64,000 nucleotides of DNA from Dimorphilus gyrociliatus (GCA_904063045.1 CAJFCJ010000005.1:305310-369309), one strand, 5' to 3'; counted from the stretch's first letter, positions 10,011 to 46,853 are shown. The notes: a model not told the origin generated them from the letters alone. Translations and numbers: made by a program.

Positions 10011-11649
10011 ATGAGAAAACTTAAGGAAATTGTTCTTCAATTTATTACGGACTATCCTGATTTACTAATTGATTATCCACATAAAAGGAATATTGTTCTG
10101 CCTCAAAGCATCTCTCAGGAAATTTTAGAGAATATTGATAAGAAACACAACAAATTATTAGAAAAATATTTACCGTATTTCAATTGCAAATATACGATTT
10201 TAAAAGAAGTGAACATTCATGCAAGATTTATTAGTGAAACTTCAATATTTTCCTTTCTAAATGGTCATAAAATTACTAATTTTAAACTATATTTTTGTGA
10301 TAATTGTCAATTGGGAACGATATTTGATTATTTAAAGAGAAAATCGAAATTAACAGAACTTACAATATCTGAAGTAAATATTAAAGAATTTAGATATTCA
10401 AACAAAATTAAAACTACTTTAAAAAGATTATTCGGAAAGTTAAAATTGAATAATTTAACTAAATTAGATTTTAGTTATACAAATTTAAATGATAATGGAT
10501 TTAAATGGATTTGTAAAAATTTAATAAATCTTCAACAATTAGATATTTCTGGAACAAAATTAACAAGATTAACAAGATTAACAAGATTAAAGAATTTAAT
10601 TATTTTTAAATTTACCGGAAGTTATAGGAATTTTAATCGTTTTGAATTATATAGCTTAAAGGATTTAAAAGAATTGGAAGAGATTCATCTATTCGAAAGC
10701 GATGCTTTACTAACAGGTCTAAGAAAGACATTATTAATAACACTACCTAATACATTCTTTGAAGATTGTGAATGGAAAAGATTGAAATATTTTAGCGCTG
10801 TAATTTTCATATCGGATCCGGCGTTCAGTCTCATGTAAAACGATTCTTGATTATTCAGGTAAAACTCTATGCTATGTTTTCTTATTCCCTCCAGAAATTT
10901 TATTCAAAAACATCCAGCATTGAAATGTTTATGCTTTTGGAATCATATAAACAATTCTTTAAGACCATTCTCACCTTCGCAAGATATTATCTTCCCTAAA
11001 GATTATACAAGAGTACGAAATTATATAGTTTTATTCTTTACTATTTCCTTTTATGACTCAAATTTTCCTTTAAAGGATTTCAACGTTCACGAAGTAAATA
11101 GGCTTATTGATATCTTTAACAACATAAATATTCCATTTGGTGATTTCTCAAACTTACTGTTATTCATCGACCGCCATTTTAATGATATGAATGATGCCGA
11201 AAAGGAAACTTTTGTTGAAAAATTGAATAAAGAAAAATTTTTTAGCGTATGACTAATTTATTCTCAATAATATACTTTTACCTTTAATGAAATAAACAAC
11301 ATTTTTTCCAGGTGACCTTGAAAAGAATCAGTTATTTCTTCAACAAGAACATCTTTAGTAATCATATAATAAATGTAAACGTTCTTGAGAGTTTTGGAAG
11401 AGTCTTAGATATTTATGATTATTCTACAAAAGATTTAGATTCGTGGCTTGAAATTTGCTTGATAATTAAAGATTTAATCAATTCAAAAGGTGAACAGAAT
11501 TGAAACTTTATTAAATAATTAACTAATTAAACTATTATTGAAAAATATTAGATTTTAATACTGCCGAAAATTATCTGGCTGCTCTCGTTCCAGTATTTAG
11601 AAAGTGTTGGCAACTTTTCAAATTGATTAATTTCAAATATAATACTTAA
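10011..11649 (+). CDS. ZYG11/ZER1-like LRR protein, paralog 1 (BC-box/Cul2-box-like N-terminus, LRRs, helical C-terminus); 4 exons
   Basis: N-terminus KLKEIVLQFI…LPQSISQEI; LRR LTKLDFSYTNLNDNGFKWICKNLINLQQLDISGT; exon 2 starts NFIQKHPALK. Short introns join ORFs 10011, 10869 and 11312 and a last exon ending TAA at 11649. Confidence 0.7.
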
Positions 11650-11771
11650 GACAATCAATAAAGATGACAATTGAACTGAAATAATGACTCAATAAACTAT
11701 AAGTTAAAAGAATCATCCGGAAAAACTGATTTATTATTCTTTGATTCAATATATTTCAAAAATCGAATAGT

Positions 11772-13025
11772 TCATTCACTTTCTTTTGAATCTAAATGTT
11801 GATTTTTAATATTTTCGACATTTTCAAGAGCCGAATTGACTGAAGCATAAATAGAAGAGAAAAAAGCTTCGAAAAGTGTAACTAGGAATCTTTCTTTAGA
11901 CGAAATTTCTTGAACATTTATTGCTGGTGCAACCATTTCAATTTTATATTGTTGATTGAACACTGACTTTACTATTTGTTCTTGATATTTACAATAAGGT
12001 TGAGATGATATTATAACAATTGACTTGGACATTAAACTTTCGCCGTACTGTCGAATTGTTTCCTCAAGGCTACTCTTTGTATTTGGTCTTACATATTTCC
12101 ATACTCCTTTATTCTGTTCTTTAAGGATCTTTGGACTATTTACAATATCTAATGGATATTTATTTATTATCGGGTTTCTCTTTGCTAAAAACGATATCAT
12201 ATCTGTTTCTGTTGGCCATTTAACACCGTATTTTGAATTAATACATTCATAGATTTGTTCATGAGCAGACATAACAGCAGCTCCATCTGTTACGGATACT
12301 CCTTCAAGATACTTATCAATTTCGCTTTGTATTTCCATACAAATATCGCATTTATTGTATTCATCCGATGACTTCTGCAGCATTTCTGCAATAATTTCTA
12401 CAGCTATCGTTTCTCCATTGAGTCTATTGTCGGAATCATTGGGCCAAAGATCTCTCTCACCTCCGACTAGAATAATACGAGATGGATTTATTTCCTTATT
12501 CTTTAGCATGTTTGCTGCAGCCTGTAATCTTAGATTAAAGCCATAATAAGCTGCTCCCAGAATTAACAGAGTATGGAATGTATTATTCTTGGGGATAATC
12601 TTATCTATAAATCCTAAATTACGAAATTTTTCAACCAGCGTATCGAAAAACTGTACCATGTCAATACGGGAAGACATTTGTCTTCGTTCCATTCCTTCCG
12701 GTCTGAAACGTGATCTCTGATTTTGTCCTATACTATTAAACCATTTTAGAGCCTCTGATATAGATGGAAACTTTTGAAAGAAAGTTCCAGCGTCCAATAG
12801 ATTGTTTTTAGCCTCTTCATTAGTCATTAAAGTATCCGGTGTTTTGCCGTTTGTAAAAGCTCCTGAAGCGTGAAATAATTGTAAAAAATCCATTTTCTGT
12901 GAGAGTGTTTTATAGCCGTAATAATGTATTGTTTCAAACAAAATATTCCTTTTTTTACAGTCTTCCGCATCAATTTGATCATAAGATAAACATTCCTTAG
13001 TCGTTAACTCATTAGAAGTATCCAT
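11772..13025 (-). CDS. Intronless 417-aa protein with YdcF/DUF218-like (HUP-fold) motif order; bacterial-like hypothetical protein
   Basis: Single uninterrupted ORF (ATG at 13025). Motifs: LGFIDKIIP…LLILGA…RL…IILVGGERDLW…PTETDM…RPNT…IVIISSQPYCKYQ…IEMVAPA. The fold assignment comes from motif recall, not a search. Confidence 0.75.
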   Translation of the reverse strand: MDTSNELTTKECLSYDQIDAEDCKKRNILFETIHYYGYKTLSQKMDFLQLFHASGAFTNGKTPDTLMTNEEAKNNLLDAGTFFQKFPSISEALKWFNSIGQNQRSRFRPEGMERRQMSSRIDMVQFFDTLVEKFRNLGFIDKIIPKNNTFHTLLILGAAYYGFNLRLQAAANMLKNKEINPSRIILVGGERDLWPNDSDNRLNGETIAVEIIAEMLQKSSDEYNKCDICMEIQSEIDKYLEGVSVTDGAAVMSAHEQIYECINSKYGVKWPTETDMISFLAKRNPIINKYPLDIVNSPKILKEQNKGVWKYVRPNTKSSLEETIRQYGESLMSKSIVIISSQPYCKYQEQIVKSVFNQQYKIEMVAPAINVQEISSKERFLVTLFEAFFSSIYASVNSALENVENIKNQHLDSKESE

Positions 13026-13476
13026 TTTATGTTTCTTTAAAAAAAAAAGGAACAATATTAAATGTTTAATAATGTTACTATCTAATTATTCAACTAGTTC
13101 TATTTTCTAACTTCTTAGTTGATAAGGCAGATTTTTTTTTTTTGTAATATGTATTGAAAATATAAACCGACTGGCCTATTTTTTATTCAGATTAGATGAA
13201 GTAACGCGAAAGAATTCGATTTGAATTGGAAAAAAATTAGTAATTATTGTTACAGACACGGCAGTATTTATCATTTTAGCGGATATTTTTATATAGACAA
13301 AATATTTCGTTATATTTGCTTTAGTATTATGTTTATAGACTGAAAAGTTGTTGTACAGACTCGGTCTTAATGTAGAATTTGTACTCAATGTAGTATATTC
13401 GAGTATTGATTAGAAATAATACGATAAGAAACTTTATCATTGCTTTTTTCATTCATTGAACATTCAACTGCAAAAA

Positions 13477-15034
13477 TTAACGGTAATTGAATGAATTTTC
13501 CAGAATTTTCGATAGTATATCGTTCATTTCTTTAAATTTTGAATTATATTTCATATCTTGAAAATATATTAAATAAATTATAATTAATTAGTAATTTGCA
13601 TAATTTATTAGAAACTTACGTATTAGTGGTTTTATTTCTAATATTCTTTCAGTAATATTATTCCATTCAAATTGATTTCCACAATCTTTTTCTTTAATCC
13701 ACAGAATCAGTTGAAAGAGATGATAAATGAATAAAGTTCTATCGCATCTTGTAGGATAGTTACAAATTGTATAATAGAGTTTTAAAGCTCTATTGAATAT
13801 CTTGAACAAATGATAGATAATTTAAAAAGTGTTAATTTATTAATAATTTCAATACCTTTAATAAATTATCACGATGTAGTTTCTCTACATCAATATCTCT
13901 TTGATCCGCCGATCTAGCTTCTAAATGTAATACAATAAATTCAAAAAGCTGTACCAAATCATCAAAAGAAACTTTTAAACAACTAAAATAATCGATTTCG
14001 CTGTTGATGAAATCTACTGCAAAATTCTGGAATAGATAAAAAAAAATCGTAGAGTATAAGTTTTATAGTTTTAATACTAGATATCACGTGATAGTATCGT
14101 GGGAAAATAAGTTGATAATTATATAAATCATTTCGTAGTATGCTATTTTTAGGTATTTTACCAAAATATTTCAACTTTGTATGGCATTTTACGAATTTCC
14201 TATTGGAAATAGAAGAAAGTGTCCAGTTAGTTTAAAGTTATGTAATAAGAGTATTATTAACTTGATAAACTGTTCGTTAATTCTGAAAATAGGAAGGGAA
14301 ACGTATTCTAAATTCATCCAACTGTTGTAATAGGACAACAAATTTTCAATTGTATTCAATAATTCAATACAATTTTCATCAATTTTACTCGAAAATTGAA
14401 TTTTTTGTAGATTCTTAAGTGATTTTAATACTAATAGATCATTAATACGAAAATATTCGCAACATTCATCAAATATAAAACTATTCAAGTTGATTAAATT
14501 ATCAATTGAATTGAATTTTAGTATAAAGGTTTTGGAAATATTCAATTTTTTTAAATTTATGAATTCTTTGCAAATAATATCGAATCCTTTTGTTTCTATA
14601 TTCGTTCCATATAAATTTAGGTTTGTTATATTTTTAAAATGAACTAATTTGCATAATTCATAAAATAAATACTTCTTTTCTTCTAATTCGTTAATGTTGT
14701 TATTATTTTCCAAAATATTAATTAGGTCATTTATATCAATATCATAAAAATTAAATATTCTCCAATATTTACATGGTGGAATCTTTTTAAATGATAATTT
14801 CGATGAATATTCATAAGAATACGCTTCATATTTCAAATTCTTTAATTTGTATCTATTACATTCTAAAGTATGAAGAAATTTCTTTGAAAGTCCGCCATTT
14901 TTTTTAGTTATTAACCAAAAGATTTGATCTTTTAGATCATAGGGAATAACATTCTCCTCTTTAAGCAAAGAAGTTTGATACATTTGAAAATTCTTTTCAA
15001 TATATAATAAAATTAAATTCTGTAGACTATTCAT
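13477..15034 (-). CDS. ZYG11/ZER1-like LRR protein, paralog 2
   Basis: SLQNLILLYI…IPYDLKDQI; LRR ITNLNLYGTNIETKGFDIICKEFINLKKLNISKT; exon 2 KFVKCHTKLK; late exon with EWNNITERILEI. Spliced by eye to a stop near 13477. Confidence 0.7.
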
Positions 15035-18610: not shown

Positions 18611-21600
18611 ATGAAAGCTTTGGAAAAATTAAATTTTAGTTTACAAAGAGAAAATCTGCAAAAACTCTTCTTCGATCAAAGTATTTTTATTCAAGTAATA
18701 CAGAAATTATCTGATCAAAATATTATAAATTCTAAAAAACAAGAAGAAATCGATAATCAATATAAATTTAGAGGTAAAATGAAAACAACCAATCTAATTC
18801 TAGATATATTGGCAACCCAACCTCTTAATACTGCAAATGAGATAGTAAATGGTCTAGAGGTGGATAATAAATACTTGTCCGAACATCTCATGGATATTCA
18901 AAATGGATGGTTAAAATTAGTTGCTGATTTGAAAAATGAATGGAAAGAAAAATATTTGTACATTAAACTTCTTCCTCTTGGATATGTTAGAGAAATAAAA
19001 ACGACAGATGTTCAAGCATCAATTGAAATGATGAATTTAAGCAATAAAGCTATATTCGAAACGTATTTAAATTCAATAAATTTGAATTATTCAAATTTTT
19101 ATAAAATTTTTCAAGCAAATTTTAATAAAATCCTTATTCAAGGTGAATCGGGAATTGGTAAAAGCGTTCAATTAAAGTATCTTGTTCATTCGTGGGCAAA
19201 CGATTATTGGGAGATATGCAAAGATAAAATTATTATAGTTATTATATCGAGGAATGTTTTACCAAGTGATGACGTATACGATACAATACTAAAGCAGAAT
19301 TTTAGAAATATTCCCTATATGAATAGAGACATCTTAATGTCGCTTTTCCAGGAGAAAAATTCCAATATTCTACTATTTATTGATGGAGCCGATGAATTTA
19401 ATATCTTGAATCATCCGTTAAATAATATTTTTGAAAAATCAAATTGTTCCATACCAACTGTAATTTGGTCTCGTAAAAGAAAAGCTCAAACTATTCAAAG
19501 TTCGTGTGACGTCACTTTCCAATTAACAGGTTTCGATAGTTCACAATTTAAGAGTTTTATACAAAGGTATTTTATTTCTATTGAAAAATCGGAAGTTTTC
19601 ATTAGAGAACTTGAGCAACAAACTAGTACTATTCAAAGCTTATTAAAGGTACCATTGATGGGACTGATGTTTTATTTTATCTGGCAGGAACTAGGTAGTA
19701 TTCTGGATAAAAGCTTATACGAAATCTATGAGAAATTAGTTGTCTTACTTCAAAAGAATATAGGATTATCAAGTGAAAGTATATTGAATAGAATGTTAAT
19801 GGTCTATAAACTATGTTTCATTTATCTACCATCTTCTAAAATATTAGTACCAGTAGACAAACACGAAGAAGAGGAACTGGTGAAATGTATAGGCTATTTT
19901 GCTCAAATTATACCTCAGTATCATACAACTCCGAGATCGGTTGAAATTCAATTTTTACACCAATCTTTACAAGAATATTTCGCCGCAAAATATCTAATTG
20001 ATAAATTTCAAACAACGAAAAGTCTTAGCTACTGGAAAACATCATTCGATAATCAATTAACTAAGATGAATAATACGAAATTATACAACGTTATTGAATA
20101 TATTAGACAGAGTTCAAATGAAATATTTCAAAAATTCCTAACCGTTTCGGAGAAATTGCAAGAAATTTACAATTGTAGTAAAGAATTGAAAGATTTATTA
20201 GCGAATGGTATAAAGGATAACAATAAATTATTGATTAAAGACGAATATATCAGTAATATTACTGTAGAAATTTTAACCGAAAAACTCGGAATACATTGCG
20301 TGGATATAACTTTAATAAATCCAAATATAGATTTATCTTTTATGACCAATCAGCTTTGTTCAAAAGCTAAATGTTTAAAGAATTTCATCATTTGTGTGAA
20401 AAGTTCAGAAAAATTTGTAGAATTGAATGCAAATCTATGGTTCAGTATTTTAAACTTGTTAGTTTCTACTAAACTTGAAAGCTTTATATTGAAAAGTGTA
20501 CAAAATGATAACAATTTACAGAAATCGTGTCTTGAAAAAAGATATCGTAATTCGGTAAGGGATACGGATTCTAAACAAACTACAAGTACTATGGTACAAG
20601 ATTCAACTCCAAATCTTCGAACACTCGATCTTTGCGGATGTCGTCTGTCCGAATCTCAATCAAAAGAACTTGCATCGTTATTATTAAAGTGTAATAATTT
20701 ACATTCTTTAAATATCAGATATACGAAAGTAATGAATTCTGGATTTATAGATATTTGTAATGGATTAAAAAATAGTTGTAATAGACTAAAAGTATTAAAT
20801 TTATATGGATTTGGTTTGTCTGAAGCAGAGTCTCTGGCTTTAGGAGAAGTATTAAGTGTCTGCTGTCAAATCGAATCGATTGATTTAGGTTGGAATGTTA
20901 GTATGGGCGCTGGATTGAACTCTATATGCGAAGGTTTGAAACTGTCCAACGAAACTCTTAAAAGTCTTAGTGTCTATTGGTGTGATTTAAATGAAAATCA
21001 ATCGGAAGCCTTAAGAGAGCTGTTACTTCATTGTTCAAATATAGAAGCTTTAAATCTAGCTTGGAATAAAAATATAAATGAAGGATTACAAAGGGTATTA
21101 GAGGGTCTTGAGCATTCTCACTCTACATTAACTAGTCTTAACCTTCAAAATTGTAACCTAACTGAGAAACAGTTGGTTTATTTGGGAGAATGGATAAAAA
21201 CTTGTTCTAGTATTAAACAATTGGATTTGGGCGGTAATAGAAGTATGTTCTGCGGCTATAAAATGATAATCGACAATTTAAAATCGTCTTCCGATTCAAT
21301 AACAAGCCTTAACTTTTACGGTTGTAATTTAACCGAATTTCAAGCAACAAATCTAAAAGACCTTTTAGTATGCTGTTCAAACATTCAATCATTAAATCTC
21401 GCTTGGAATAGAAATATGGGTTACGGAATTCAATCGATAATAAACAGTTTAAAAAGTTCATGCAATACTATTAAAACTCTTAATTTTTGCGGATGTGATA
21501 TAAGAGAAACTCAATTAATATCTTTAGCAGAATTATTATCAATTTGCCCAAAACTTGAATTATTGGATTTAAGTTATAACACAAAAATGAATTATGGACT

Positions 21601-21760
21601 TAAAGAAGTAATTAACACTTTAAAAACCTCTTCAGATAATCTAACCAGTCTAAAAGTAATTGGTTGCCGTTTGACACACGATCAAGTAGATACTTTAAAG
21701 GAATTACTATTGACTTGTCTAAATGCAATTGACCAAACTCGTAAAATTTCTCTTTATTAA
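18611..21760 (+). CDS. NLR: CARD-like death fold + NACHT + RI-type LRRs, 1049 aa, intronless
   Basis: Walker A ILIQGESGIGKS, Walker B LLFIDGADEF, winged-helix FLHQSLQEYFAAKYL, alternating 28/29-aa LRRs (LRTLDLCGCRLSESQSKELASLL…). The N-terminal ~95 aa is a helical death-fold-like segment. Confidence 0.9.
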   Translation: MKALEKLNFSLQRENLQKLFFDQSIFIQVIQKLSDQNIINSKKQEEIDNQYKFRGKMKTTNLILDILATQPLNTANEIVNGLEVDNKYLSEHLMDIQNGWLKLVADLKNEWKEKYLYIKLLPLGYVREIKTTDVQASIEMMNLSNKAIFETYLNSINLNYSNFYKIFQANFNKILIQGESGIGKSVQLKYLVHSWANDYWEICKDKIIIVIISRNVLPSDDVYDTILKQNFRNIPYMNRDILMSLFQEKNSNILLFIDGADEFNILNHPLNNIFEKSNCSIPTVIWSRKRKAQTIQSSCDVTFQLTGFDSSQFKSFIQRYFISIEKSEVFIRELEQQTSTIQSLLKVPLMGLMFYFIWQELGSILDKSLYEIYEKLVVLLQKNIGLSSESILNRMLMVYKLCFIYLPSSKILVPVDKHEEEELVKCIGYFAQIIPQYHTTPRSVEIQFLHQSLQEYFAAKYLIDKFQTTKSLSYWKTSFDNQLTKMNNTKLYNVIEYIRQSSNEIFQKFLTVSEKLQEIYNCSKELKDLLANGIKDNNKLLIKDEYISNITVEILTEKLGIHCVDITLINPNIDLSFMTNQLCSKAKCLKNFIICVKSSEKFVELNANLWFSILNLLVSTKLESFILKSVQNDNNLQKSCLEKRYRNSVRDTDSKQTTSTMVQDSTPNLRTLDLCGCRLSESQSKELASLLLKCNNLHSLNIRYTKVMNSGFIDICNGLKNSCNRLKVLNLYGFGLSEAESLALGEVLSVCCQIESIDLGWNVSMGAGLNSICEGLKLSNETLKSLSVYWCDLNENQSEALRELLLHCSNIEALNLAWNKNINEGLQRVLEGLEHSHSTLTSLNLQNCNLTEKQLVYLGEWIKTCSSIKQLDLGGNRSMFCGYKMIIDNLKSSSDSITSLNFYGCNLTEFQATNLKDLLVCCSNIQSLNLAWNRNMGYGIQSIINSLKSSCNTIKTLNFCGCDIRETQLISLAELLSICPKLELLDLSYNTKMNYGLKEVINTLKTSSDNLTSLKVIGCRLTHDQVDTLKELLLTCLNAIDQTRKISLY

Positions 21761-27177: not shown

Positions 27178-29014
27178 ATGGTACTAACTCTGAAGGATAC
27201 AGCTTGGCTATGTATTGGATATAATAAACTGTTTTGTGTGCAGTATTGGAAAAAGAAAGATCGCAAACTACCATATTTATACTCTGAGATGATAATAGAT
27301 CTCTTTAGTTCAGAACCCAATGGATTATCGGAAAATTTAACACTGTTTACTGATTTAAAAAAGATAAAACTATTTGGTACAAAAATAGAAAATGTAGATT
27401 ATTTAACGATGATCGAAAAATATTATCTGACGTCATTAAAGGTGTATAGAGCAAAACCTATGGATTTAATCAAGTTGTTTGATGTGTTGAAATGGGAAAA
27501 TTCATTTAAAATTACTATTTCTTGTTGTCATTTTACTCATGAAAAAATCTTTGAAACTCTCTTTAAGAATGTTAATTTAAAAAATTTAACAAAACTTAAT
27601 ATAAGCTTTACAAATCTAAATGATAAAGGTTTGCAATATTTATGTAAAGAAGCCTCAAATCTAAAAAAGTTGGATATCTCTGGAACGGATGTTTTAACTT
27701 TAAAATATATTAAACATCTAAAAGATTTAACAAGTTTTAAGCTTTCTTCTGCTCCGAAATGTCTTGATGAAAATGAGATTAACAACTTAATCTCTCTGAC
27801 TAAACTGCAAAAGCTCTTCTACTTTGATGATAATCCTTTTACTGATTCTAGCAGAAATTATTCAAAGGCTGAAACCACCAAAACATTTTTAGTTGATGGA
27901 TATTGGAAAGATCTTGAACATTTATCCTATCCAATTGCTCTCGATTCAACTAGAGACATACTGAGGTTAGTGTTTCGACCAGCTTAACTATTCTTTCGGT
28001 GTCGTAGCGTCATGTTCTTCTCATCCGTTTGTATATTTGTTATTATGTAGAATAAATTATATCTCGGGGGTTAGAGCAATGGATTCTGCCATATCGTCAG
28101 CAGTATCATGAATTATCTTTCAATTCTTATAGCTATACTGCTGACTTTGTGGACAATCCAGATAATCTTTTCATTTGACATTAGCCTTTATTTCTTCGTA
28201 AACGATTTAGTATACTTATTTATATACCTTTATAAATAGTCGAATATCTCTTACAACCTGTGTTTTCTTGCTTCTTTCATAGATACTTTATAAATAAACA
28301 TCCCAAGTTAAAGGTATTTCGAATAAGCAATTCATCAATGTTTAACATTCGTTGGCAGAGCATTTCAAGTGTAATTTTTCCAAGGACGTATGAAGTAATA
28401 CGATAGCTTATATCATTCAATCAGTTCTTAAATAACTATTAACTGATATTTCAGTCATTCAGTATCGATACGTTAAATGAAGAAATGATAATATTAGAGG
28501 AAAATGTATTATCATCAATAGATTACGATATATACTTGAAATACATATATGATCATTTAAATGACAATGAAGAGCAAATGTATAGTCTTCTAAGTGAATT
28601 ACATACAAAGACAATTCTTAGAGTAAGATTATTACTTATCATAATGTATTAATAAAATTAATTACATCTTTTCTTTTATAAAAGATCTTCAAAAAGAGAT
28701 TACTCTGTTTTGGAAAATGCATATTTACTCCTAGTATAGACGAGCAAGAGGATGGTCTTATTACGTCTCTTAAGCTATTAAATTTAATAAAATACTCTTC
28801 AAAAGATGAAATCGAATGGAAAAACATATGTTTCGCAATTCTCCATATAAACAATGGTACATAATTCAATTGTTCATTTTCAATCTTTCAAATGAACATC
28901 TATTGTTTTTCAGGACGTGATAAGAAGAGTCAGAATGAAAATTTAACTACTCAGTTAAAGCTTATTCTAAACAAATGTTCACCTATTGGACCATTTAAAT
29001 ATAGTTCATTCTAA
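27178..29014 (+). CDS. ZYG11/ZER1-like LRR protein, paralog 3
   Basis: MVLTLKDTAWLCI…LPYLYSEMI; LRR LTKLNISFTNLNDKGLQYLCKEASNLKKLDISGT. A late exon IFKKRLL…EIEWKNICFAILHI matches paralog 2. Middle exons only partly resolved. Confidence 0.65.
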
Positions 29015-31636: not shown

Positions 31637-34600
31637 ATGAATAGCAGCGAAGAATTAAAGATAAATCCTCTACTTTCGTTTTATAAAAACAACCTAAAAG
31701 AACTATTAGCAGACGACGAACGATTTATCATTCATCTTTGCCAAGAGAGTGTTTTTAATCTTGACGATAGAAAACGTGTAAAGTTGGATTTCGAAGCAAT
31801 TTTTAACAGTTATATTCTAACATTACCTACTTATAAACTTTTAGCTATTTTACATAAATTATCACTAGATAAACACGTAAATTTAGCTCGTAAAATAGAA
31901 AATACATGGGAAAGTTTAATAATAGAAACAAAGAGATTAGCTGTTGAAAACTATTCAACAGTGTTGAAATTTTCCAAATTTCAAAGTGATAAAGTAAACT
32001 TTATCAATTTTCAAAATATATTAACTCCAATACAAATCGTTGCTCGAAAGAAACCCGAATCATATAAAGATGATGTTTACTTTGAGGAAGGTTTCGAATT
32101 TCTAGAAAATATTGACAATTCTCAAGGTCGTTTTCTAATTAAAGGTGAAGCTGGCGTTGGAAAAAGTTATCATTTTATTAAACTTATTCATTTATGGGCG
32201 ATTCAAGAGAGAATCCTTCAAGATTATCTCGTTTTAAAAGTTGATTTGAGTCAACTTTCTTCTAATGATAGCTTTGAAGAGAATTTATACAATCAGAATT
32301 TTAGCAAAGATTCATGGGTAACACGTGACCTTTTACATTATTTCTTATCGGACGATTGCGAATATAGAAACATAAAGATTATTTTTCTATTTGACGGAGC
32401 AGATGAATACGGAAGTAAAGAATCCCTTTTTTCAAATATTATTGAAAATGACGGATGTATCAAATTTCCAATAATTGTTTGGTGCCGAAACTGGAAAGCC
32501 GAACAAATAGAAGATACTTATCATAATGTTCTTGAGATATTAGGTTATAAAGATGATCATATACCTTTATTTTTTGCCAAATTCTTTCACGAAGGAACAG
32601 ATATATTTCAAAATTTAATAGAATCCGATAATACTCCAAAGAGTCAGCAACTAATAAACTTTTTACAAAAGAATAGAGAGGACCTACTAAAATCTTGCTC
32701 AAATCCTTTAATTGCATCTATAACTGCAAATATCTGGGATACTAAATGGAATTCAATGAAGAAAGATTCATATTCAATTTACGATGATGCTGTTGAATTG
32801 TTGATGAAGAATCGTACGAATACAATCGATAAAGAAGATTACGATGCATTTCTTCATCAATGCGCACTAGAAGCATTTATAAACATTCTTTTTGATAAAC
32901 CAATCGAAATGAAAAAATACAGTGAAGATTCTAAAGTATTTGGCAACTTATTAACAACTTTAACATGCTTTCAAACCGGAAAGAAACATTATAGATTTAT
33001 ACATTTTTCATTTCAAGAATATTTCGCAGCTAAATTTATCATAAAATGCTTAGAAACGAACGCCAATTGCCTTATTTCAGATGTTACTGAACAGCAATGT
33101 CAAGGTAAACTTTTAGAGATAATTTGCCAATCAACTTATACTCTTAAGTTAAAGGCGACTTTTGATTTTATTAAAAGTCAAAATATGCAAATTTTTTCAA
33201 TGATTATCAAAGAAAATCCAATAATTTTAAGTATTTTGGATACTGTTAACGAAAAAATTATAGATTTAATCAAATACAAAAGTGATAGTCAAAAGATATA
33301 TCTCGAAGATGGATATCTATCAACAACAGTATGGTTTTCGATTGTTGAAACATTTTCAAGAAATATTACTGTATTATCGTTCAAAAATGTTAAAATTAAC
33401 TTTCAAAAGTTTATTAATATTTCAATTGAAAGCTTAAAAGGAACATTGATTGAATTATCTATAGACTCTGGTGTGTATAATCATTTTTCTGTTAGAATGA
33501 TAGAGGATATCGTCAAAGAATTCTCCAATTTAAAACTACTCTTATTAGCTAATATTCCATTTAATAATTCAAAAAAGGCAAACTTTTTCATCAATTCAAA
33601 TTCTTTAGAATCGTTAAGTTTAATTAATTGTGAAATTGACTTTAATTTACTAAACCTTTTGAAATGTAGGCATTTAAATCACCTAAATCTATCCCACAAT
33701 ACAATAGCAGGTAAGAATTTTCACGTTGAATAACATATTTAATAACTAAATTTCTATTTATTTCATAATTTAGCTGGTCAATTAGAAAAACTTGTTGATT
33801 ATCTAGAAAATTCCCTTGAACTTCATTCAATAAACTTTTCTTACTGTGCTTTAAAAGATGAACATTTTACGATTTTGAAGAGATTATTCGAAGAGATGAC
33901 CGATATTTACAATTTCTGGTTAGATGGAAACGAATTTAGTGATAGTTTTGTTGATGATTTAATGAAATTTCTAATTGAAAATGGCAATAATGTTAAAGAA
34001 TTCTCAGTTAAAGATTGTAATAGTAACATTACAGCGTCGACAGTTACTAGTCTATTGGATAATAATCTATCTTTAAATATTCTTAATCTCTATGGTAATA
34101 AACTGTTAAATGTAAGAGAAGTTTCATTTCCAAAGAGTATTATTCTTTCCAAAGAACTTCAGGAGTTAAGATTTCCCATAATGGATTGCGATACTGCCAT
34201 TGAATATAAAGATTTCTATGAAATAATGGATGGAAATCTTGAATTGAAAATGTTGGATTATAGTGGAAATAACTTAAAAGTACAGTTTCTATTTGGTGTT
34301 TTACAAAAGATTATCTCTTTTTCGACTAATCTAGAGAGTATAAACCTTAGTAATTGTAAATTACCATTAGAACATCAGGAGGAATTATTTAATAGTTTAA
34401 AAGTACACGATAAACTGTTGAATATGAATTTAGAAGGAAATTTATTGAATGAAAAGATATTTCTTAATTTTATTAATCATAGATCAAAAAAATTGAATAA
34501 AGAAGGAGTGAAACTAAACGTATCTCAATGCGATCTTAGACAATTTTCTCTAATCGAATTGATAAATTTGAATATGTTATCTATAAATTTATCTGGAAAT

Positions 34601-37147
34601 AACTTGAAAGAAACTATTAATTGGAAGAAAATGACAATAAAAAATCCTACATGTATTAAAGAACTTCTCCTTCAAAAGTGCCAATTAAACTCTTCGTTTG
34701 TTAACGTACTAACCGTAAATCTTCATAATTTACCATCATTAGAAGTTTTGGATATATCAATTAATAAGTTTAGTGATCAAGCCATTTTGAATTTTTTCAA
34801 TAAGGCCTCAACTCAGAAAAATAGCTTAAAATATGTTTATTTTTACGGTGGAAAGTTAACTATAAAAGCTTTAATTGATTTATCAATATCTATAAGTAAA
34901 ATAAATGATATTGAAGTCATTAATTCACCTTTTATAGACGAGGAAAGTGATGATTTTAACCAATTGAATTCTATTAATTTAGCAAATTCGAAATATTTTA
35001 ATCTACAAATTATTAATGAAATTCTATTTCAAATAGACAGTATAATGAAATATAAGAAATTACAAATAAATTCAACAGAATCACCAAGATACGATATGAT
35101 TCGAATGGTAAAAGAATCATCATTAGAAATAAGGAGTATAAGTATTTATGACGATTTAATACCAGATGAAATAAATCATATGAAATCAATTATTGAGAAT
35201 AATACCGATATTGAAACTATGGAATTAAATTTTAATTTATCCCATGAAACTATAATGACGTTTTTTGGAATGACAAAAGAATTTATTCGAAGGATTAAAT
35301 CATTTAGTTACAATTCAAATAGCAATTCAAAATCAAGTATTATGGATATAATAAATTTTCATGAATTCTTACATAATCAACAAGATTTAAAACGTCTCTC
35401 TTTAACTTGTTTGAATTTTGTAACAAGTAACGCCATTAAATTTTTTAAAGACTATCCAAATAATTCACAAAATTTGAATACTTTGAAATTATTTCGTAGT
35501 AAATTTACAGAGGAGACAAGCGAATATCTTGGAAAATTCATTAGTAATCAATTAGGTTTAAAATCTCTGGATTTAGGATCAATTAATCTTGATGGTAATA
35601 TTGGAGAGAAATTGTTTAAGAATATCTCAAACTCTTGCTGCAATCTAAATAAAATCAACTTATCTAATTGTCATTTAAACGATACAGCATTGGAATATCT
35701 TGGACAAGTTTTTAGTTATCAAACACATCTGGATTCTATAGATTTATCTGGAATTGATTTAAGTAACAAATACGGATGTCAATTATTTCAGAATTTGGCC
35801 AATTCAAATAAATTTACTAAAGTTAAATTGCAAAATTGTAGTTTAAATGGTAAAATTTTACCAGATTTGCAAAGATTTATTCAAAATCAAACAAATTTAA
35901 ATGTCGTTGATCTGTCTAACGTAAAGTATAATGTCGATATTCAACAAGATATTCTTCAGGATTTCTCATTCAAGTGTAAAAATATAAGTGAACTTTACTT
36001 ACGCAATTGTCGCTTTAGTGATAGTCTCTCGAGAGTTATTGGAAAACTACTAACTGAACAAAACAGTATAAATGTTCTGGATTTATCATTTTCTAACTTA
36101 TCTAAAACGGGAGCTGAAAATTTGTTCAATCAAATATCTCATAATACAAGCTTATCTGAAGTTGATCTAAGCAATTCAACATTTACGGAAGATATGATTG
36201 AATACATAGGGAAATTTCTTTACAATCAAATATCTCTAAAAGTTATGAATATTTCCATGATAAAACTTAAAAATATGGTTGGAATGTTATTCTTTCAGCA
36301 TCTTACAAATCCAAATATGAAACTCAAGGAACTGTATCTAACTGGCTGTAAATTTACTGCTAACATGACTGAATACATTGGAAAGTTTATTGATAGCCAA
36401 AATCATTTACAAATTTTAGATCTATCAAACACAAATCTACGTTCAAACATCGGAAAAAATCTCTTTATTAACATATCGAACAAATGCTGTAATTTAAGGA
36501 ATTTGAATATGGAAAATTGTCAATTAACAGAAGATATGACAGAAGAACTTGGAAAATTCATTGGCTATCAGAATCAATTGAATATACTAGACTTGGCCGA
36601 TGTAAATTTAGAGCATAACATTGGAAAGAATTTGTTTGAAAATATTTCTAAAGTATGCTGTAACATCCATGAAATATGTTTGGATGACTGCAAACTAACT
36701 GAAGATATGTCAGATTCTCTTGGAAAATTCATTGGTTATCAAAACAAATTGGAGCTTTTGTATATGGCGAATGCAGACCTGAAAAATGATATTGGGAAAA
36801 ATTTCTTCAGAAATATTTCCAGCCAATGCTGCAATATTAGAGAAATTATTATGGAAAAATCCATATTTACAGAAGATGTAACAAAATATCTGGGAGAATT
36901 TATTAGCTACCAAAAGAAATTGAAACTATTAGATATTGCCGATACGAAATTAGATAATGCCATTGGAATGAATTTATTTAAAAATGTATCGGATCTATGC
37001 TGTCCAAAAGCCGTCAATTTATTAGGATGTAAACTTTCAGATCAAGTTACCGAATGTTTAGATAATACCTTTGGCTTAGAAACAGATATTGCTATGGATT
37101 CTTCGGCAGATGAATGTGTTAATGAAGAGATAGATATGTTAGCCTAA
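31637..37147 (+). CDS. Large NLR: death-fold-like N-terminus + NACHT + very long LRR region; two exons (intron 33711-33773), about 1815 aa
   Basis: Walker A FLIKGEAGVGKS, Walker B IFLFDGADEY, FIHFSFQEYFAAKFI. Donor GCAG|GTAAGA at 33711 and acceptor TTTAG| at 33773 put ORF 31637 in frame with ORF 33875 (5448 nt spliced). Confidence 0.9.
36350..37040 (+). repeat. 171-bp (57-aa, paired LRR) coding tandem repeat in the NLR C-terminus
   Basis: ACAGAAGATATG/ACTGAAGATATG/ACAGAAGATGTA at 36527, 36698 and 36869 (spacing exactly 171). Protein unit TEDMxExLGKFIGYQNxLxxLDLA…IGKNLFxNISxxCCN. Confidence 0.85.
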
Positions 37148-39426: not shown

Positions 39427-40701
39427 TTAACAATAATCATCTTGCGTTGGTGCAGAGCATGTTTTATAATGAAAAATAGAAGTTGGACTGGTAATTAGCA
39501 TGTCATCAAAAATATGACCAAAATGTAAAATTGACTTGTTAGCTGTAACTGAAATACCAGAGCAATTTTGTAAACTTTGACATAATTTCAAACATTGAAT
39601 TGAAAGTTGACAATCTTGATCAAATGTATCTTTTTTCATTTCTATTGAGGATAGAGAATAGAAAGGAGTTTCGACAATAGCCGGTTGTCCAATTATATAT
39701 ATATTAGTAAAAGTGAATTGAAAAGGTGACTTGACTATAAGATATCGTCCAATAGTAGTTCTCTTACAAGTTATAGTAAAATAATATCTGTCGTCTTTAA
39801 TCGTAAAAGTATCAGTATCTGAAGAACTGAGATGATTGCATAGCGTTGTTCTTAATCGTTCAGAGTATCCATGACCCAAATGAAACGAAATCTTTCCGTT
39901 GACATTTGGTTGTACATCCGTTGTAACTAATATCTTTTCGACATTTGAGCATGTTTTCAATTGAAGTTTGAATACACTCAAATACAAATTAATAGGAATT
40001 GAAGTTGTAAGCGTTGGTTGCGGATAACTGATAAATGTAGCTAAGTATTTTACCGTTGCTTTAAATTATTGATATTATTAGTTAATTTATATATTCTGCA
40101 TCTTATTTGAAGGTTTATACCTATCTTAAGAAGATCTTTTACAACACCAGCAATAAGGAGATAAAATCTGGTCGGAGTTGTAGTATCAAAAGCAATTGTA
40201 TCTCCAAGTGAAGAGCAGCAGTTGTGTTTTAATCGAGAATGGAATGGATATTCGCTAGTTTGATCTTTCAATTCAGAAATACATCTTACATTGCTGTCAG
40301 GAGGACTAGACTTTCTAGTATGGATACCAATCACATCGAATTTTTTAACGAGAAAAGGTTCTTCTAATTCTACCATTTGTACTTGATGAAGTGGTCCTTG
40401 AGGGACGTTTGTTTCGTGGACTAATGTATAAGTTAAATCACTAACTGGTCTCCAAATTGCTACATTTTAAACGAAATTATTAAGGGCGAAAGTACGAAAA
40501 TATCAACGCAAGACACACACCTATATAACAAAGGTAATTATTCTCTCTGGCATAACTGTATTGAAACAAGTATCCATCTTCTTGTATATATTGGGTTGGA
40601 GCGATAATTATAGTTAAGGAACCTCCATTATAGGTTTCTTTCGATACCGCATTTGCCAATTCTACATCCGGTGGATAAAATCTCAGCGAAGTAACAAACA
40701 A
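39427..40701 (-). CDS. Multi-exon protein with F5-8/FTP-like and C-terminal PAN/apple-like segments; 5' end unresolved (probably further right)
   Basis: TITCKRTTIGRYLIVKSPFQFTFTNIYIIG (FTP-like C-half), then QCLKLCQSLQNCSGISV (PAN-like); collinear ORFs 40050-40376 and 40480-40701. Confidence 0.55.
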
Positions 40702-41913: not shown

Positions 41914-43428
41914 ATGGCTGTTTTTACGTTAAAGAGACTTTCTTTGGAAATAATTTCAAGAAATTTAGGATTATTATCTCAATTTTGCGAAAAGAAATCT
42001 TTAAAAATACCAATGGAATTAAGTAATTTAATCTTTAATTATTCAATAAAAGAAATGGAATATTTAACTGAGAATGAATTGAGATTTTTTAATTCAAAAT
42101 CATCGATATTAACAAGTATTTGTTTATATGGAAAAAGATTAGTAAATATCAAAGATTTCTCCTTTTTAAACAATCATCCAATCAAAATTGTACATTTAAC
42201 AAATTTTCCGGAAGTTAATGAAGTTACTAAATTCATAAATTTAAATATTATTGAAGAAATTACATTTGATAATTGCCAATCAAGTTTTGAAAATGTTTCA
42301 AAGATATTCAACAGTTTACAATCTTTAAAGAAGCTTACTTTAATTAGAAGATCATTCTTACATATTCCATTCAAGTATTTAGGTAAAATGTTACCAAATT
42401 TACAGGAATTAGTCCTATTTGGACAGAGTTACATTTTCTACGATTTAAGAAAGTTATTTCCAAATTTGGTGGCCTATGAGAATATTAATAGTTATAAGCC
42501 TAAGAAGGAGATAAATTCAATAAGAAATTTTAAACATCTAGTAAAAATCGACATTAACTTTTTTGATATTGCAATATCGGATAACCGTCTAAAGGAATAT
42601 TACAGTATATTCTTAGAAATTGATTTATGGCCTGACCTTGAAATTTTCATATTAACTGCAAAGAATGTACAATTAATTGAAATAATCAAGTATATTTTTA
42701 TCATTCAATTGAATTGAATAGTTGTTATTAATATCGATATTTCTTTCTTTCTTTCGTATAGAGTTTTTATTGAAAATCATAAAAAGTTAAAGTTTATTGG
42801 CGTTTTATTCGGAGATTCTAATACAACATCAAACACGATTGATATATCAACATCAGCCACAATGTTCATAGAGAATAATGATGTTTGTTTATAACTTTAT
42901 TGATTAACCTTGACCCCTTTTATTTCTATATTTTAGGATAAAAACTACACAGATATTGGTACTTTATCAAAGATATCAAACTATTTAAAGAATCATAATT
43001 GTGAATATTTTTACAAATGTCTTAAATTTTGTACTATTCAAGAAATTTCAAAAGATGACTGTAGAACAAACAATCATAACATTCAATTAATTTTTAAAGT
43101 AAGTATTTTATAATATTGTAATGAATTTTCTTAATAAATCTTCATTCTTTAGATAATTTGCGATATATTAGAATATCATCAATTGATTGAATTCGAAAGA
43201 GTTAATTTAATAAAGAGCTTTTTCCACTTTCGTCATTGTTTTGGTTTATTGAATAATTTAAAAACTTTTGAATCTGAAATATGGATCTATATCTTATCTT
43301 TTGGATTAAAAGCTCTCAAAGTTCCAGAAATAAACTATACAAGTGATTTGTGTTCGAATATATACTCTATTTTAGATTATCATAAATATTGTTCAAAAAT
43401 GATTATGAACCTTTATAAAAGTCGTTAA
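41914..43428 (+). CDS. ZYG11/ZER1-like LRR protein, paralog 4
   Basis: FTLKRLSLEIISRN…IPMELSNLI; FFNSKSSILTSICL (similar to the ZER1/ZYG11 N-terminal region); exon 2 RVFIENHKKLK. 3' end approximate. Confidence 0.7.
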
Positions 43429-43478
43429 ATTAATAAAATAGTTAAGTTTATTTTCTTAAAAATTACATCTTATACTTT

Positions 43479-44555
43479 TTAACATCTCACTGGTCTTGTG
43501 CTGAAATTTGGCCAACCTTGGATAACGCTGTAAAGGTATCTTCCTGGACAGGATGTAGACATTGCGTCTCTGTGGCCAAATAGCTCGTAACCGCTAGATA
43601 GAATACCTCTGCTTACGGCACATCTAGCTAAGTTTTGTATAGCAGTAAGAATAATTTGAGGAGGAGAAGAGGTTTCGAAATTTCCCATCGCTGAAAAAGC
43701 TATAGATCTTCTATTATGACAGCCGGTATGAGCGCCAACAGTAGACCAGCCTCTTCCCTCGTATGCTCTACCGTCACCGCCAATAAGGAAGTTGTAACCA
43801 ATATCATTCCACCTGTTAGAATCCATATGATAATTTTGTATAGCTCTAGTTCTAGCGCTGCAAGTTGATTGAGAAGAACAGGTAGCTCCAGCGGTATGAT
43901 GAACAAACAACATAGAAACTGGAGTCACTAAATTTGTTCTACTTCTTGGAGGTCTTGCCTGCCATTGACTTCTGGTAACAATTTGAATAGCACTGCAAGA
44001 TTTAGCTGCAACAAATTAAAAATTGAAGATTTAACTGTACTTGTAAATTATTAAATTATACCTAAATCTTCATAAGTTTCTTTAGTATTTTCTGCAATTA
44101 ATAATTAAGATTATGTAATAACAACTTTATTTCGTATGATTCAAACGTTTAAATAACTTACGACATTTGTATTCTGGAGCTACAATCAACGAATCGGCGT
44201 CAATCCAAAGATCAAGACCAGGGGAATATTCAATGCTTTGAAATTCTTTGTTATTTTCTAAATAGAAAAAAGAGACAATAAATAATTATGCTTTATCTTA
44301 TAAAACATTCAAAATAACCGTTTAATTTACAGGTTTCTTTCGTTTCGGTTGAAGGGAAACAAGTTTCTTCAGGTATTGACGTAATTGTGAATCCGCAAGC
44401 TTAAGTTGAATAAACATTGAAGATTTTTAATAGCAAATAGTAAAAAATATCTTACGAGTTTGCTTAGCAAGAACATTGCTCTTTACAGTACAAAAGCAAC
44501 GAGCTTCTGCTCCTTGAAAAATTGCTAAAACAACAATTAAGGTGAAAATAACCAT
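43479..44555 (-). CDS. PGRP: Peptidoglycan recognition protein (amidase-type) with signal peptide and N-terminal SH3b-like module
   Basis: IVTRSQWQARPP; FVHHT; WNDIGYNFLIGGDGRAYEGRGW; GAHT; GHRD; TSCPG. Zn/catalytic His, Tyr, His and Cys are all present. ATG at 44555; upstream exons join through ~55-60-nt introns. Confidence 0.95.
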
Positions 44556-45327
44556 TTTTAATATATTAACGGTTACGTAAACGATCTACTACGGTTTTAA
44601 ACTGAACTAGTGTCTTTTGAATAATATATGTTAGTGGTAAGAAGAAAGCATATGATAATTTCTCACGCTTATTATTCTTTATCATATTATCTTCTTGGAA
44701 TTTTCCTTTTTTAAGTTTTTATTCAAACAAAACAACAAATTTTTTTATGAAATTCAATTTATCAAGCCGAAAACATGATTGACAATTATTTAAAGTTTAC
44801 TTGAAATTCCTAACCAAAATGGTTATTAGCATAAACATTTCTAACAATCTCTCTATAGTCTTTTAGTATATAAATATAACAATATTACGTATTAGTATGT
44901 AGTAGAGCAGGGAGAGGAACGCGTATACAAATACCTTAAATTCCTTTAATTGTATCTGTGTTTTTTTCTTCTTTTTAAAGTAGGCTATCTAGGCAGGAAA
45001 ACAACACAATGTCACTTTATCAACTAGAATATAGCTTAATTTAGTAATTATAATCCTATGAAAAGTTAGTTAGAAAGTTTTAGATAAAGATTATTAAAAC
45101 GTAATTTTTAAAATATAGATGGCGCTTATTAATATAGAAAATAGAAAAATAACACTCTTCGTATCATTTTCAACTATGATATTTATTTGGAAAAGTAACT
45201 TTATCTGTTGTCTGCGTAATATTCAAGATAATTGATATTTTTATAGATGTATTTACTTGACTTTGCCTTAAAAGTACCAGATGTCCAGTTGAACAATACT
45301 TCATAAAACGTCCGCAAATCAATAGTT

Positions 45328-45348
45328 TAACCCTAACCCTAACCCTAA
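45328..45348 (-). repeat. Short interstitial telomere-type repeat (TTAGGG)3.5
   Basis: TAACCCTAACCCTAACCCTAA on the + strand. Confidence 0.8.
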
Positions 45349-45873
45349 GACGAAGTCTTTCTAAGTACAAATTAGTTGTTGTCCTTTGCTTTTTGACCAT
45401 TTGCGGACATTTTCTGTCAACTTCGGGTTTGAAAATACTAACGTAAGCAAGAAAAATATAGACTTTCTTTTACCTGTAAACTGGAATGAAATAAATCTCC
45501 GGTGATTATATTAAGCATGTATTATACTATATAATGATTACATCCTCTCCCCACTGCAATTATCAGTGATACTTGTCAATTTCCCTACTATATTTAGTTA
45601 AGCCCTACTTTTTTAAATTAATACTGCATCATTGTCTCAGAAAAGAACTAATTAAAAGTAAGACAGCTTTTGATTTTAAGTAAATAATTTGTCTATTCTA
45701 ACTATATTAAATACAAAAAGTCTCTTGTTAAGTTTATCTTCATAATGTCAGTTGTAGTATGAAATTTTTAAAAAATCGTTACTAATAGAATTAATTATAA
45801 AAATTATAGATGGCGCTTTACTAATAGTTTGTATTTATTTGCAGAAAAATTTTAAACATCCGTCATCTGCTAC

Positions 45874-46853
45874 ATGTCTAAAAGGAAGAGAATTTTAACA
45901 CTGGAAAAGATTGTATTAAAACAAATAATAAAGGATTTCGAACAAGTTTCTCAAGTATGGGTTAATTCTGGAATATGCCTTCCCTTTAGATTTTCTGATA
46001 GGATCTTTAAGAAATTACACAAGAAATACGAATTATCGAAATATGCGCAATTCTTTAATTATAAATACGCAAGATTGAATGATGTAACAATTTTTGGAAC
46101 TGAAATAAAAAGATCTTCGTTACTATCATTTCTGAAAAATCATCAAATTAAATCAATTAAAATTCTTGGAATTCATACAGAAATATTACTTGATCTATTT
46201 AAATACTTGAATGAAAATCATCTACAAGAATTGAAAATATGTAGGACGAAAATCGTTTCCTACTTTTACTGGGATAGGACTATTTTGGAGAGAGTTTTCA
46301 ACAATTTTACCTTTGATAACTTATTAAAATTGAGTTTTAAACATACTTATCTGAATAATCAAGGATTTGATTATATTTGTTATAAATTCTCAAATATTCA
46401 TGATTTAAATATATCGGGAACAAAAGTAACAGATATAAGTCCAATAGTAAATTTAAGAAATCTTCGAATATTCAAATTTAATGATATTAAGGCAAAATAT
46501 GTTAAAATTGATTTTAACTGCTTGAAAAAGTTACCTCATCTACAAGAAATATACATTCTATATCGGCTCGATCATTGTATTCCTCCTTTTCTTACTCAAA
46601 TCAATTTATTAGAAAATGGCTTTTGGGAAGATCTCAGATATATTTCATTATTTACAGGTGGTCAAGAGACGGAAGAAATCTTAAGGTAACATCTCAATCA
46701 CTTTCAAAGAGAATCTATTAATCCTTTTACTTATACAATAGAAGCTTTATAAGAAGGCATTTAAAGTTGAAAGTTGTTAAACTTCACTGTACAAAGAATG
46801 GATTTAATATACCTAATTACAGTCATATTTCTCAGAATATACTCACAATCTAA
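45874..46853 (+). CDS. ZYG11/ZER1-like LRR protein, paralog 5; apparently C-terminally truncated (possible pseudogene)
   Basis: ILTLEKIVLKQI…LPFRFSDRI; LRR LLKLSFKHTYLNNQGFDYICYKFSNIHDLNISGT. Exon 2 RSFIRRHLKLK reaches a stop after ~37 codons, and retrotransposon sequence follows where the other paralogs have more exons. Confidence 0.6.

Follow-up and report, generated by a model that had tools for sequence, protein, structure and literature searches.

A large family of putative ubiquitin-ligase adaptors related to ZER1/ZYG11 in the annelid Dimorphilus gyrociliatus

Introduction

Human ZYG11B and ZER1 and Caenorhabditis elegans ZYG-11 are substrate receptors of the Cullin-2 RING ubiquitin ligases (CRL2) in the pathway of Gly/N-degrons, and in all of them a VHL box is followed by a curved solenoid of leucine-rich repeats (LRRs). 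The same order of box and solenoid is found in a family of genes of the annelid Dimorphilus gyrociliatus, five of which, g1-g5, are the subject of this work. They lie in a stretch of 64,000 nt (C5:305310-369309), hereafter the window, of a 77.9-Mb assembly whose contigs are named here C1, C5, C6 and so on. Counted from the first letter of the window, they start at 10011 (g1, + strand), 15034 (g2, - strand), 27178 (g3, + strand), 41914 (g4, + strand) and 45874 (g5, + strand).

Most animals have one or two zyg-11 genes, and Caenorhabditis has tens, with 19-37 per species, zeel-1 among them (Seidel et al. 2011, PMC3144186). Concerning D. gyrociliatus, its genome paper describes only nine expanded gene families, most of them locally duplicated and implicated in immune responses, and the text never mentions ubiquitin or ZYG11 (PMC7854359).

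The explanation favoured here is that the five genes are old paralogs that arose by duplication at the DNA level from the single ZER1/ZYG11 gene of this worm, in a family that numbers at least 60 full copies. All five retain an N-terminal VHL box, formed by a putative BC-box helix and a Cul2-box-like helix, and a ZYG11-type LRR domain of about 8-10 repeats. The nine-repeat armadillo (ARM) domain has been replaced by a shorter, diverged helical tail, of about 170-220 amino acids (aa) in g1-g4 and almost none in g5, without the Gly/N-degron pocket motif. The head would dock on Elongin C, Elongin B and Cullin-2, and each paralog would act as a CRL2 substrate receptor for a particular range of substrates, which would depend chiefly on the variable helices of the C-terminus and not on the concave face of the LRRs. 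Judging from sequences and predicted models, we lean with moderate confidence towards ZER1-derived paralogs that act as CRL2 substrate receptors. The result is a well-supported annotation with a speculative function and not a new mechanism.

Results and Discussion

Assignment of the five genes to the ZER1/ZYG11 family

The five first exons are intact open frames of 267-281 codons. In DNA of 28% GC, where about 8% of random codons are stops, the probability that 270 codons stay open by chance is near 1e-10. A genome census found exactly five family copies in the window, g1-g5, and the five paralogs proposed by an earlier note on this DNA stand, with their starts and strands. Along exon 1 they align from end to end with 23-31% identity, the residues L4, I12, P31, I38, W255 and L258 (g1 numbering) are invariant, and intron 1 is found in phase 2 at an identical position in all five genes. 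The block LxxLxxSxTNLxxxGFxxIC...L(D/N)ISGT, attributed by the same note to four genes, occurs in g1, g2, g3 and g5, and g4 has a degenerate form of it. The motif FIxxHxxLK, noted at the start of exon 2 in four of them, was also found, although as F(I/V)xxHxxLK it opens exon 2 in all five.

Four independent lines tie g1-g5 to ZER1/ZYG11, namely structure, a sequence link to the orthologue, gene structure and a language-model lead. The ZYG11/ZER1-like assignment, with a BC box and a Cul2 box ahead of the LRRs, is borne out by the structure, the link to the ZER1 gene, the shared intron and the conserved residues, and it is strongly supported and very probably correct.

Searches and fold comparisons were done with single exons or with natural full-length database proteins (P0009 and others). 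When g1 exon 1 was modelled with AlphaFold2 from an alignment of 21 members, the predicted local distance difference test score (pLDDT) was 84. When this predicted model was compared with the PDB by Foldseek, the top match was human ZYG11B in the Elongin B/C complex (9lk2_A, E 1e-7, TMq 0.66). VIA placed residues 1-275 of the model on residues 15-286 of the ZYG11B chain, which comprise the VHL box and the LRRs, with Z 20.2 and a root-mean-square deviation (rmsd) of 2.6 A over 255 residues, and the next folds (FBXL17, RNase inhibitor, RanGAP and internalins) reached a Z of 16 or less. In the ESM Atlas, a 'Zer-1-like LRR' cluster ranked second (0.96).

The true orthologue of ZER1/ZYG11 is located at C6:583906-586446 (+ strand, loci L019 and L025-L027) and consists of a head/LRR exon followed by four exons with the Pfam domain ZER1-like_2nd. 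It is the only gene of the genome in which PF22964 (ZER1-like_2nd ARM) is matched in consecutive exons (C6:585139-586446; 64, 60, 38 and 30 bits). The exon just upstream of them, C6:583906-584667, was matched by the profile of the five genes with E 2e-27 over positions 3-274, and a 21-member profile from which the orthologue had been excluded matched the same head/LRR exon with E 8e-58. Furthermore, intron 1 of the orthologue has the place and the phase (phase 2) seen in g1-g5, with ENILR before it and NFLKAHKKLTFLG after it, and the motif that follows the intron aligns to the family (hhalign, E 7e-5). The orthologue also retains the degron-pocket motif LWNITDE, which fits the residues W522, N523 and D526 of ZYG11B (PMC13201589).

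The docking head

BC boxes follow the consensus (S/T/P)LxxxCxxx(A/I/L/V). Residue conservation and entropy were calculated for 56 family copies from the D. gyrociliatus genome. Position 3 (g1 numbering) is S or T in 38 of the 56 copies, position 4 is Leu in all of them and position 12 is I, L or V in 54. Position 8, where the consensus has Cys, holds C (11 copies), T (10), I (9), V (9), A (8) or S (8); in g1-g5 it is V, I, A, S and V, as had been noted earlier, and in the true orthologue it is Ala. A Cullin-box helix with its φP is present, since position 30 is hydrophobic and position 38 is I, L or V in all 56 copies, position 31 is Pro in 50 and position 34 is I/L in 46. By spacing and aligned ranges, these four positions match F50, P51, V54 and L58 of ZYG11B.

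In ZYG11B, the residues contacting Elongin C include L18, L26, F50, P51 and L58, an opposing cavity is formed by L19, C22, L23, L26, F50, P51, V54 and L58, and the mutants L18S and P47A/V49A/F50A/P51A lose their activity (PMC13201589). Residue 1 of the g1 model sits on residue 15 of the ZYG11B chain, and the loop linking the BC box to the Cullin box is about 6 residues shorter than that of ZYG11B. As judged by spacing and aligned ranges, and not by residue-level superposition, the conserved head positions correspond to the Elongin C contacts of ZYG11B. Between species, the head is the most constrained part of the protein, with a ratio of nonsynonymous to synonymous substitution rates (dN/dS) of 0.075.

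The presumed partner is encoded in the genome as well. Elongin C is found at two loci, C7:4250133 (- strand, L074) and C9:2345401 (+ strand, L075), with near-identical products, and the exon that was compared is identical to human Elongin C at 49 of 53 positions. The doubling is either a real duplication or a haplotig pair. From these features we infer that the head could bind Elongin C and Cul2 and that the proteins could function in a ligase.

The C-terminal tail

PF22964 was not matched in exons 2-3 of g1 (E 0.01 or better), nor in the C-terminal exons of other copies or in full-length family proteins (E 1 or better). Exon 2 of g1 gave no Pfam match, and neither PF22964 nor another Pfam family was matched by the C-terminal exons; a weak PF22964 match of 27 bits is retained in a single copy, near C6:4.24 Mb. 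The motif WNxx(D/E), present in the true orthologue within LWNITDE, is absent downstream of all 21 family genes examined, and no match was obtained when the family was compared by hhalign with an ARM exon of the orthologue.

At the sequence level the family tails are homologous to one another: g1-g4 and 12 further copies can be aligned over an exon that contains an invariant Trp, with a mean column identity of 19% versus 31% for exon 1. P0009, a natural full-length family protein of 570 aa, is about 75% identical to the copy L006 on C11. Its model overlays ZYG11B with Z 23.9 (model residues 1-537 on chain residues 15-533, rmsd 12 A), and its tail is modelled as all-helical with low confidence (pLDDT about 50-80). 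Since this all-helical tail overlays ZYG11B up to residue 533, the tail is probably a shortened and strongly diverged ARM remnant without the canonical Gly/N-degron pocket, and the substrate-binding surface might lie there.

Some observations weigh against g1-g5 as ZER1-derived ligase receptors. Among the five genes, Pfam LRR_Zer-1 is above its cut-off of 27 bits in g1 only (40.1 bits). This model was rejected as a decisive family marker: it also matches many unrelated LRR open reading frames (ORFs) and an archaeal control genome, and because of the latter little weight is placed on the match. When a profile of the first 120 residues (head and first LRRs) was searched against PDB sequences, ZYG11B did not appear and only weak generic LRR and FBXL17 matches were obtained; therefore the head is not assignable by sequence against the PDB. 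Even exon 1 of the true orthologue matches ZYG11B with E 0.004 only. In the Pfam PF22964 and hhalign tests, the C-terminal domain had no sequence similarity to the ZER1 ARM domain, and the overlap of the P0009 tail with the ARM repeats is structurally weak because of the low confidence and the high rmsd of that model. Moreover, the canonical BC-box Cys is kept in only 11 of 56 copies, and the conservation of the head could be structural rather than functional because its helices also cap the LRR solenoid.

Some of these points would fit LRR scaffolds that are no longer ligase receptors, in which the head would be a solenoid cap or the short forms, such as g5, would be Elongin BC decoys. In most copies another residue stands in place of the BC-box Cys, the ARM domain for substrates is truncated and, in g5, nearly absent, and the ZYG-11-like part of C. 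elegans ZEEL-1 alone gave no rescue (PMC3144186). However, the residues that do not vary over 56 diverged copies coincide exactly with the positions of contact with Elongin C, dN/dS is lowest in the head, and the true orthologue itself has Ala instead of the Cys. A loss of the receptor role is thus unlikely.

Family size, clusters and age

The census was done with the five-gene profile against the D. gyrociliatus genome (E <=1e-3) and gave 120 matches, which is a lower bound. About 60 of them are full-length head and LRR exons with open frames, and the lineage-specific expansion suggested previously is supported, with 120 matches and at least 60 full copies. In the weaker matches, which lie within ORFs of 400-900 codons, the profile reaches no further than the head and first repeats. 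Matches of this kind (profile positions 2-150) were seen on many contigs at the start of longer ORFs of 400-940 codons, for example at C1:3597555-3604894, C69:82523, C80:73273 and C110:36211. Since the profile matches only the head and first repeats there, the ZYG11-type head is also carried by larger LRR proteins.

The cluster at C5:219-510 kb, which includes the window, has 29 matches, and other large clusters are located on C11, C16, C8, C17, C19 and C1 and at C5:2.5 Mb and C5:3.25 Mb. A tree of 62 copies, with the true orthologue as its root, does not unite the window genes in a single clade: the grouping of g1, g3 and g5 is weak (SH-aLRT 87), the sister of g2 is the copy at C5:285 kb (SH-aLRT 99), and g4 is in a separate clade. 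Terminal branches measure about 1 substitution per site, versus 0.45 for the true orthologue, and because of this length the tree indicates that the window genes are old duplicates and not a young tandem array.

In this tree, two copies on small contigs, C41:101573 and C211:9743 (L015 and L030), are near-identical, with branches of 0.15-0.17, and all other copies are far apart; the pair represents either haplotigs or a very recent duplication. Intron 1 has been lost in some copies, namely C11:1211032 (L006), C16:1007337 (L011) and C5:439931 (L002), where the open frame runs through FxxxHxKL in ORFs of 462, 421 and 319 codons. It should also be mentioned that the GenBank model DgyrCDS8598 (1631 aa) is matched three times by the profile and appears to fuse three adjacent family genes.

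A profile search of 1.84 billion representatives gave a list swamped by multi-repeat LRR proteins. The 10 single- or few-stretch matches looked up in it were six annotated Dimorphilus proteins and four sequences from Logan assemblies. Word-indexed searches gave almost no matches outside Dimorphilus and Logan, probably because AT-rich words filled the candidate list.

Selection and diversification

Logan assemblies of a related species conserve the order PGRP (peptidoglycan recognition protein) gene, g5 and PAN-domain gene, and the syntenic orthologue of g5 is L021:2929-3744. The dN/dS ratios are NG86 values, as YN00 was unusable on saturated dS. The g5 pair shares 73% aa identity (dN 0.165, dS 1.54, dN/dS 0.11), a result close to that of the neighbouring PGRP gene pair (79% identity, dN 0.155, dS 1.42, dN/dS 0.11). 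The copy L006 on C11, compared with another assembly, gave 76% identity, dN 0.141, dS 1.19 and dN/dS 0.12, and the g4 pair 52% identity, dN 0.362, dS 1.06 and dN/dS 0.34. These ratios are rough because dS is near saturation (1.1-1.5), but none of them approaches 1, and the values for g5, L006 and g4 therefore correspond to functional genes under purifying selection. The description of the set as rapidly diversifying is not supported by these three orthologous pairs.

For g1-g3, no orthologue was found in the related assemblies at >=50% identity. Their best matches are only 32-37% identical, for which reason no dN/dS was obtained, and the missing orthologues could be due to gene turnover or to gaps in those assemblies.

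Diversification of the concave face of the LRRs, proposed earlier as a check, was analysed with the 32 x positions of the eight LRR strands marked on the g1 model, against the other 139 positions of the domain. Variability at the concave positions does not exceed that of the others and tends to be lower, with a mean entropy over the 56 paralogs of 2.62 bits versus 2.95 bits. Between orthologues, 28 of 96 concave positions differ versus 149 of 402 others (one-sided Fisher p 0.94).

The comparison with the related species also showed local differences in the region. About 2.2 kb of the window, 46900-49100, which separates exon 2 of g5 from the PAN-domain gene, is missing in the syntenic contig. 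Further copies of a segment of it, at about 47063-47720, are found with 69-83% identity on C14, C141 and C128, and because of this recurrence it is probably a low-copy mobile-element remnant. The contigs L068 and L071 (Logan SRR23372229 and SRR23372216) carry homologues of window genes (39430-39600, 30553-30786 and 51901-52119) in changed order and orientation, around copies related to g4 and to g1/g3, which suggests that the region has been locally rearranged between species.

Immune neighbours

The family copies of the window are interleaved with genes of immune type. A NACHT gene of the type of the nucleotide-binding domain and LRR receptors (NLRs) is located between g2 and g3 (18611..21760, + strand; Pfam NACHT 47.6 bits, cut-off 26.7). 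A second NACHT ORF of 698 codons is found at 31637-33733 (+ strand, 29.7 bits), and the ORF of 1090 codons directly downstream (33875-37147, + strand), without a Pfam match, may be the C-terminal part of the same NLR gene, of an unrecognised type. Between g4 and g5 there is a PGRP-type amidase exon (43479..44015, - strand; Pfam Amidase_2 76.4 bits), syntenic in the related species. The interleaving noted before is thus correct for two NACHT genes and the PGRP gene; for the lectins it is weak, as there are only a sub-cut-off F5/8-type-C match and PAN-domain exons.

Co-localisation was counted by hand from the tables of family and NACHT matches with a radius of 25 kb. Of 120 family matches, 25 (21%) are within this distance of any of the 98 NACHT matches, versus about 6% for a random point, and the cluster at C5:219-510 kb has four NACHT matches, with about 0.4 expected. 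Among the nine largest clusters, three have NACHT matches (C5:219-510 kb four, C16:970-1008 kb two and C17:247-303 kb two), and six (C11, C8, C5:2.5 Mb, C5:3.25 Mb, C1 and C19) have none within 25 kb. The enrichment looks real but modest, and the counts are not independent because both families are locally duplicated. The genome-wide co-localisation with NACHT loci put forward for checking is found in part, as some enrichment exists and most matches are far from NACHT genes.

These neighbours had led to the proposal of a CRL2-based intracellular defence arm, in which the paralogs would diversify fast and recognise foreign or pathogen proteins for degradation. The interleaving in the window, the proximity to NACHT genes genome-wide and in the C5 super-cluster, the locally duplicated immune genes that make up most of the nine expanded families (PMC7854359) and the degradation of enterovirus VP1 by human ZYG11B (PMC11998487) are consistent with it. 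Nevertheless, the dN/dS values of 0.11-0.34 accompany a value of 0.11 in the neighbouring PGRP gene, variability at the concave LRR positions is lower than in the remaining domain in both paralogs and orthologues, the paralogs are old, and the synteny of g5 is kept in another species. As about four fifths of the family matches lie more than 25 kb from any NACHT match, and so do six of the nine largest clusters, a defence arm embedded among immune genes was not borne out, and we consider it improbable. Nothing tested shows that the family serves immunity, and the narrower link to the neighbouring NLRs remains as a candidate of low probability.

In that narrower link, the family would regulate NLRs of the host through turnover or 'functional degradation' of the adjacent NACHT receptors, as CRL2-ZYG11B/ZER1 does with cleaved human NLRP1. 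Part of the family would then be dedicated CRL2 receptors controlling the stability of adjacent NACHT receptors, with adaptor and receptor duplicating together. NACHT genes are interleaved in three of the nine largest clusters and ZYG11B binds the Gly/N-degron peptide of NLRP1 (bioRxiv 10.1101/2024.06.24.600508), but the family lacks the WNxTD degron-pocket motif that the true orthologue keeps, the majority of clusters have no NACHT neighbour, and large locally duplicated families tend to co-reside in the genome without a functional link. Such a control of NACHT receptors seems quite unlikely; if true, it would be the annelid counterpart of the ZYG11B/ZER1-NLRP1 'functional degradation' switch.

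Finally, F-box-like adaptors of the Skp1-Cul1-F-box (SCF) ligases instead of CRL2 are highly improbable, given that no Pfam F-box was matched in any of g1-g5 at E up to 1, that the match to ZYG11B is better by 4 Z units and includes the head, and that the family descends from the ZER1 gene, in spite of a second head helix, (I/L)PxxφxExIφ, which resembles the F-box start and aligns weakly to that of FBXL17, of FBXL17, FBXL2 and SKP2 as the next best structural matches (Z 15-16) and of two Skp1 genes in the genome (C4:657118 and C19:2368239).

Exon organisation of the five genes

The predicted g1 protein has about 455 aa. Exon 1 (10011..10834, + strand) encodes the putative BC box (residues 3-12), the Cul2-box-like helix (30-42) and about 8 LRRs, and ends at a gtaaaa donor at 10835. 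After a phase-2 intron of 60 nt, exon 2 (10895..11246, + strand) starts with NFIQKHPALKCL and contains the last LRR strand and then a helical region; its opening motif aligns with the exon 2 start of the true ZER1 orthologue. Exon 3 (11312..11503, + strand) is the C-terminal helical exon with the family-invariant Trp, followed by the stop codon. Between g1 and g2 there is an intronless ORF of 427 codons (11772-13055, - strand) without a Pfam match.

In g2, g3 and g4, exon 1 also carries the head and the LRRs, and the inner splice sites of the remaining exons are approximate. Exon 1 of g2 is located at 14262..15034 (- strand) and its exons 2-4 at approximately 13591..14199 (- strand; open frames 13986-14231, 13835-14062 and 13591-13821), where FVKCHTKLKYFG is at the start of exon 2 and the invariant Trp lies in exon 4. 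For g3, exon 1 (27178..27965, + strand; Pfam LRR_6 25.7 bits and LRR_Zer-1 24.4 bits) is separated by an intron 1 of 317 nt from exons 2-4 (approximately 28283..28861, + strand; open frames ending at 28403, 28649 and 28861). Its exon 2 starts with FINKHPKLKVF and its last exon holds the invariant Trp. The most diverged of the five is g4, with exon 1 at 41914..42689 (+ strand), where the block SxTNL...ISGT is degenerate, and exons 2-4 at approximately 42762..43425 (+ strand; open frames 42718-42891, 42937-43110 and 43153-43425); its last exon is conserved in the related species with 37% identity.

The shortest tail is that of g5, in which exon 1 (45874..46685, + strand), with the head and the LRRs, is followed by a short exon 2 (46742..46853, + strand) that starts with FIRRHLKLKVV and reaches the stop codon. 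The helical C-terminal exons were not found for this gene, either in D. gyrociliatus or in the orthologue of the related species, and the next gene is the PAN-domain gene.

Comparison with known systems

Other LRR proteins resemble the family in a more general way. The PRAME family of eutherian mammals was also expanded by local duplication (PMC3037382). For this family, no specific sequence or structural match to the annelid genes was found. PRAME acts as a BC-box receptor of CRL2, and PRAME proteins are not known to have the post-LRR motif and the intron of ZER1 type. The F-box/LRR proteins (FBXL17, FBXL2 and SKP2) likewise have a short helical docking head in front of an LRR solenoid, but they dock on Skp1-Cul1 and not on Elongin C-Cul2; the family has no F-box Pfam signal, and their structural score is lower than that of ZYG11B.

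Regarding ZYG11B and ZER1 themselves, intron 1 and the post-LRR motif FxxxHxKLxFLG are common to the family and to the worm's own ZER1/ZYG11 gene, and the Elongin C contact positions appear conserved in the family. The differences concern size, tail and number. The family proteins have about 310-570 aa versus about 730-770 aa in ZYG11B and ZER1. The nine-repeat ARM domain contrasts with a short helical tail without a PF22964 signal or the WNxTD pocket motif, and one or two copies contrast with dozens.

The Caenorhabditis expansion of zyg-11-like genes is a parallel case, being also lineage-specific, with tens of genes partly in tandem arrays. However, the expansion in D. gyrociliatus is of independent origin, in an annelid whose genome is compact, and it is larger (at least 60 full copies and 120 matches). 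Furthermore, unlike the Caenorhabditis case, no transmembrane fusion was seen in the D. gyrociliatus family and there is no known link to a toxin-antidote system. The genome holds roughly 14,000 genes, and a family of at least 60 ZYG11/ZER1 copies in 78 Mb would rank among the largest of this worm. The expansion offers a natural series of VHL-box/LRR scaffolds with swapped or shortened substrate-binding tails, with which one could ask in what way CRL2 receptors acquire new specificities, and whether expansions of this kind go together with those of NLRs. It would be, after that of Caenorhabditis, the second known large expansion of the ZYG11/ZER1 ligase adaptor.

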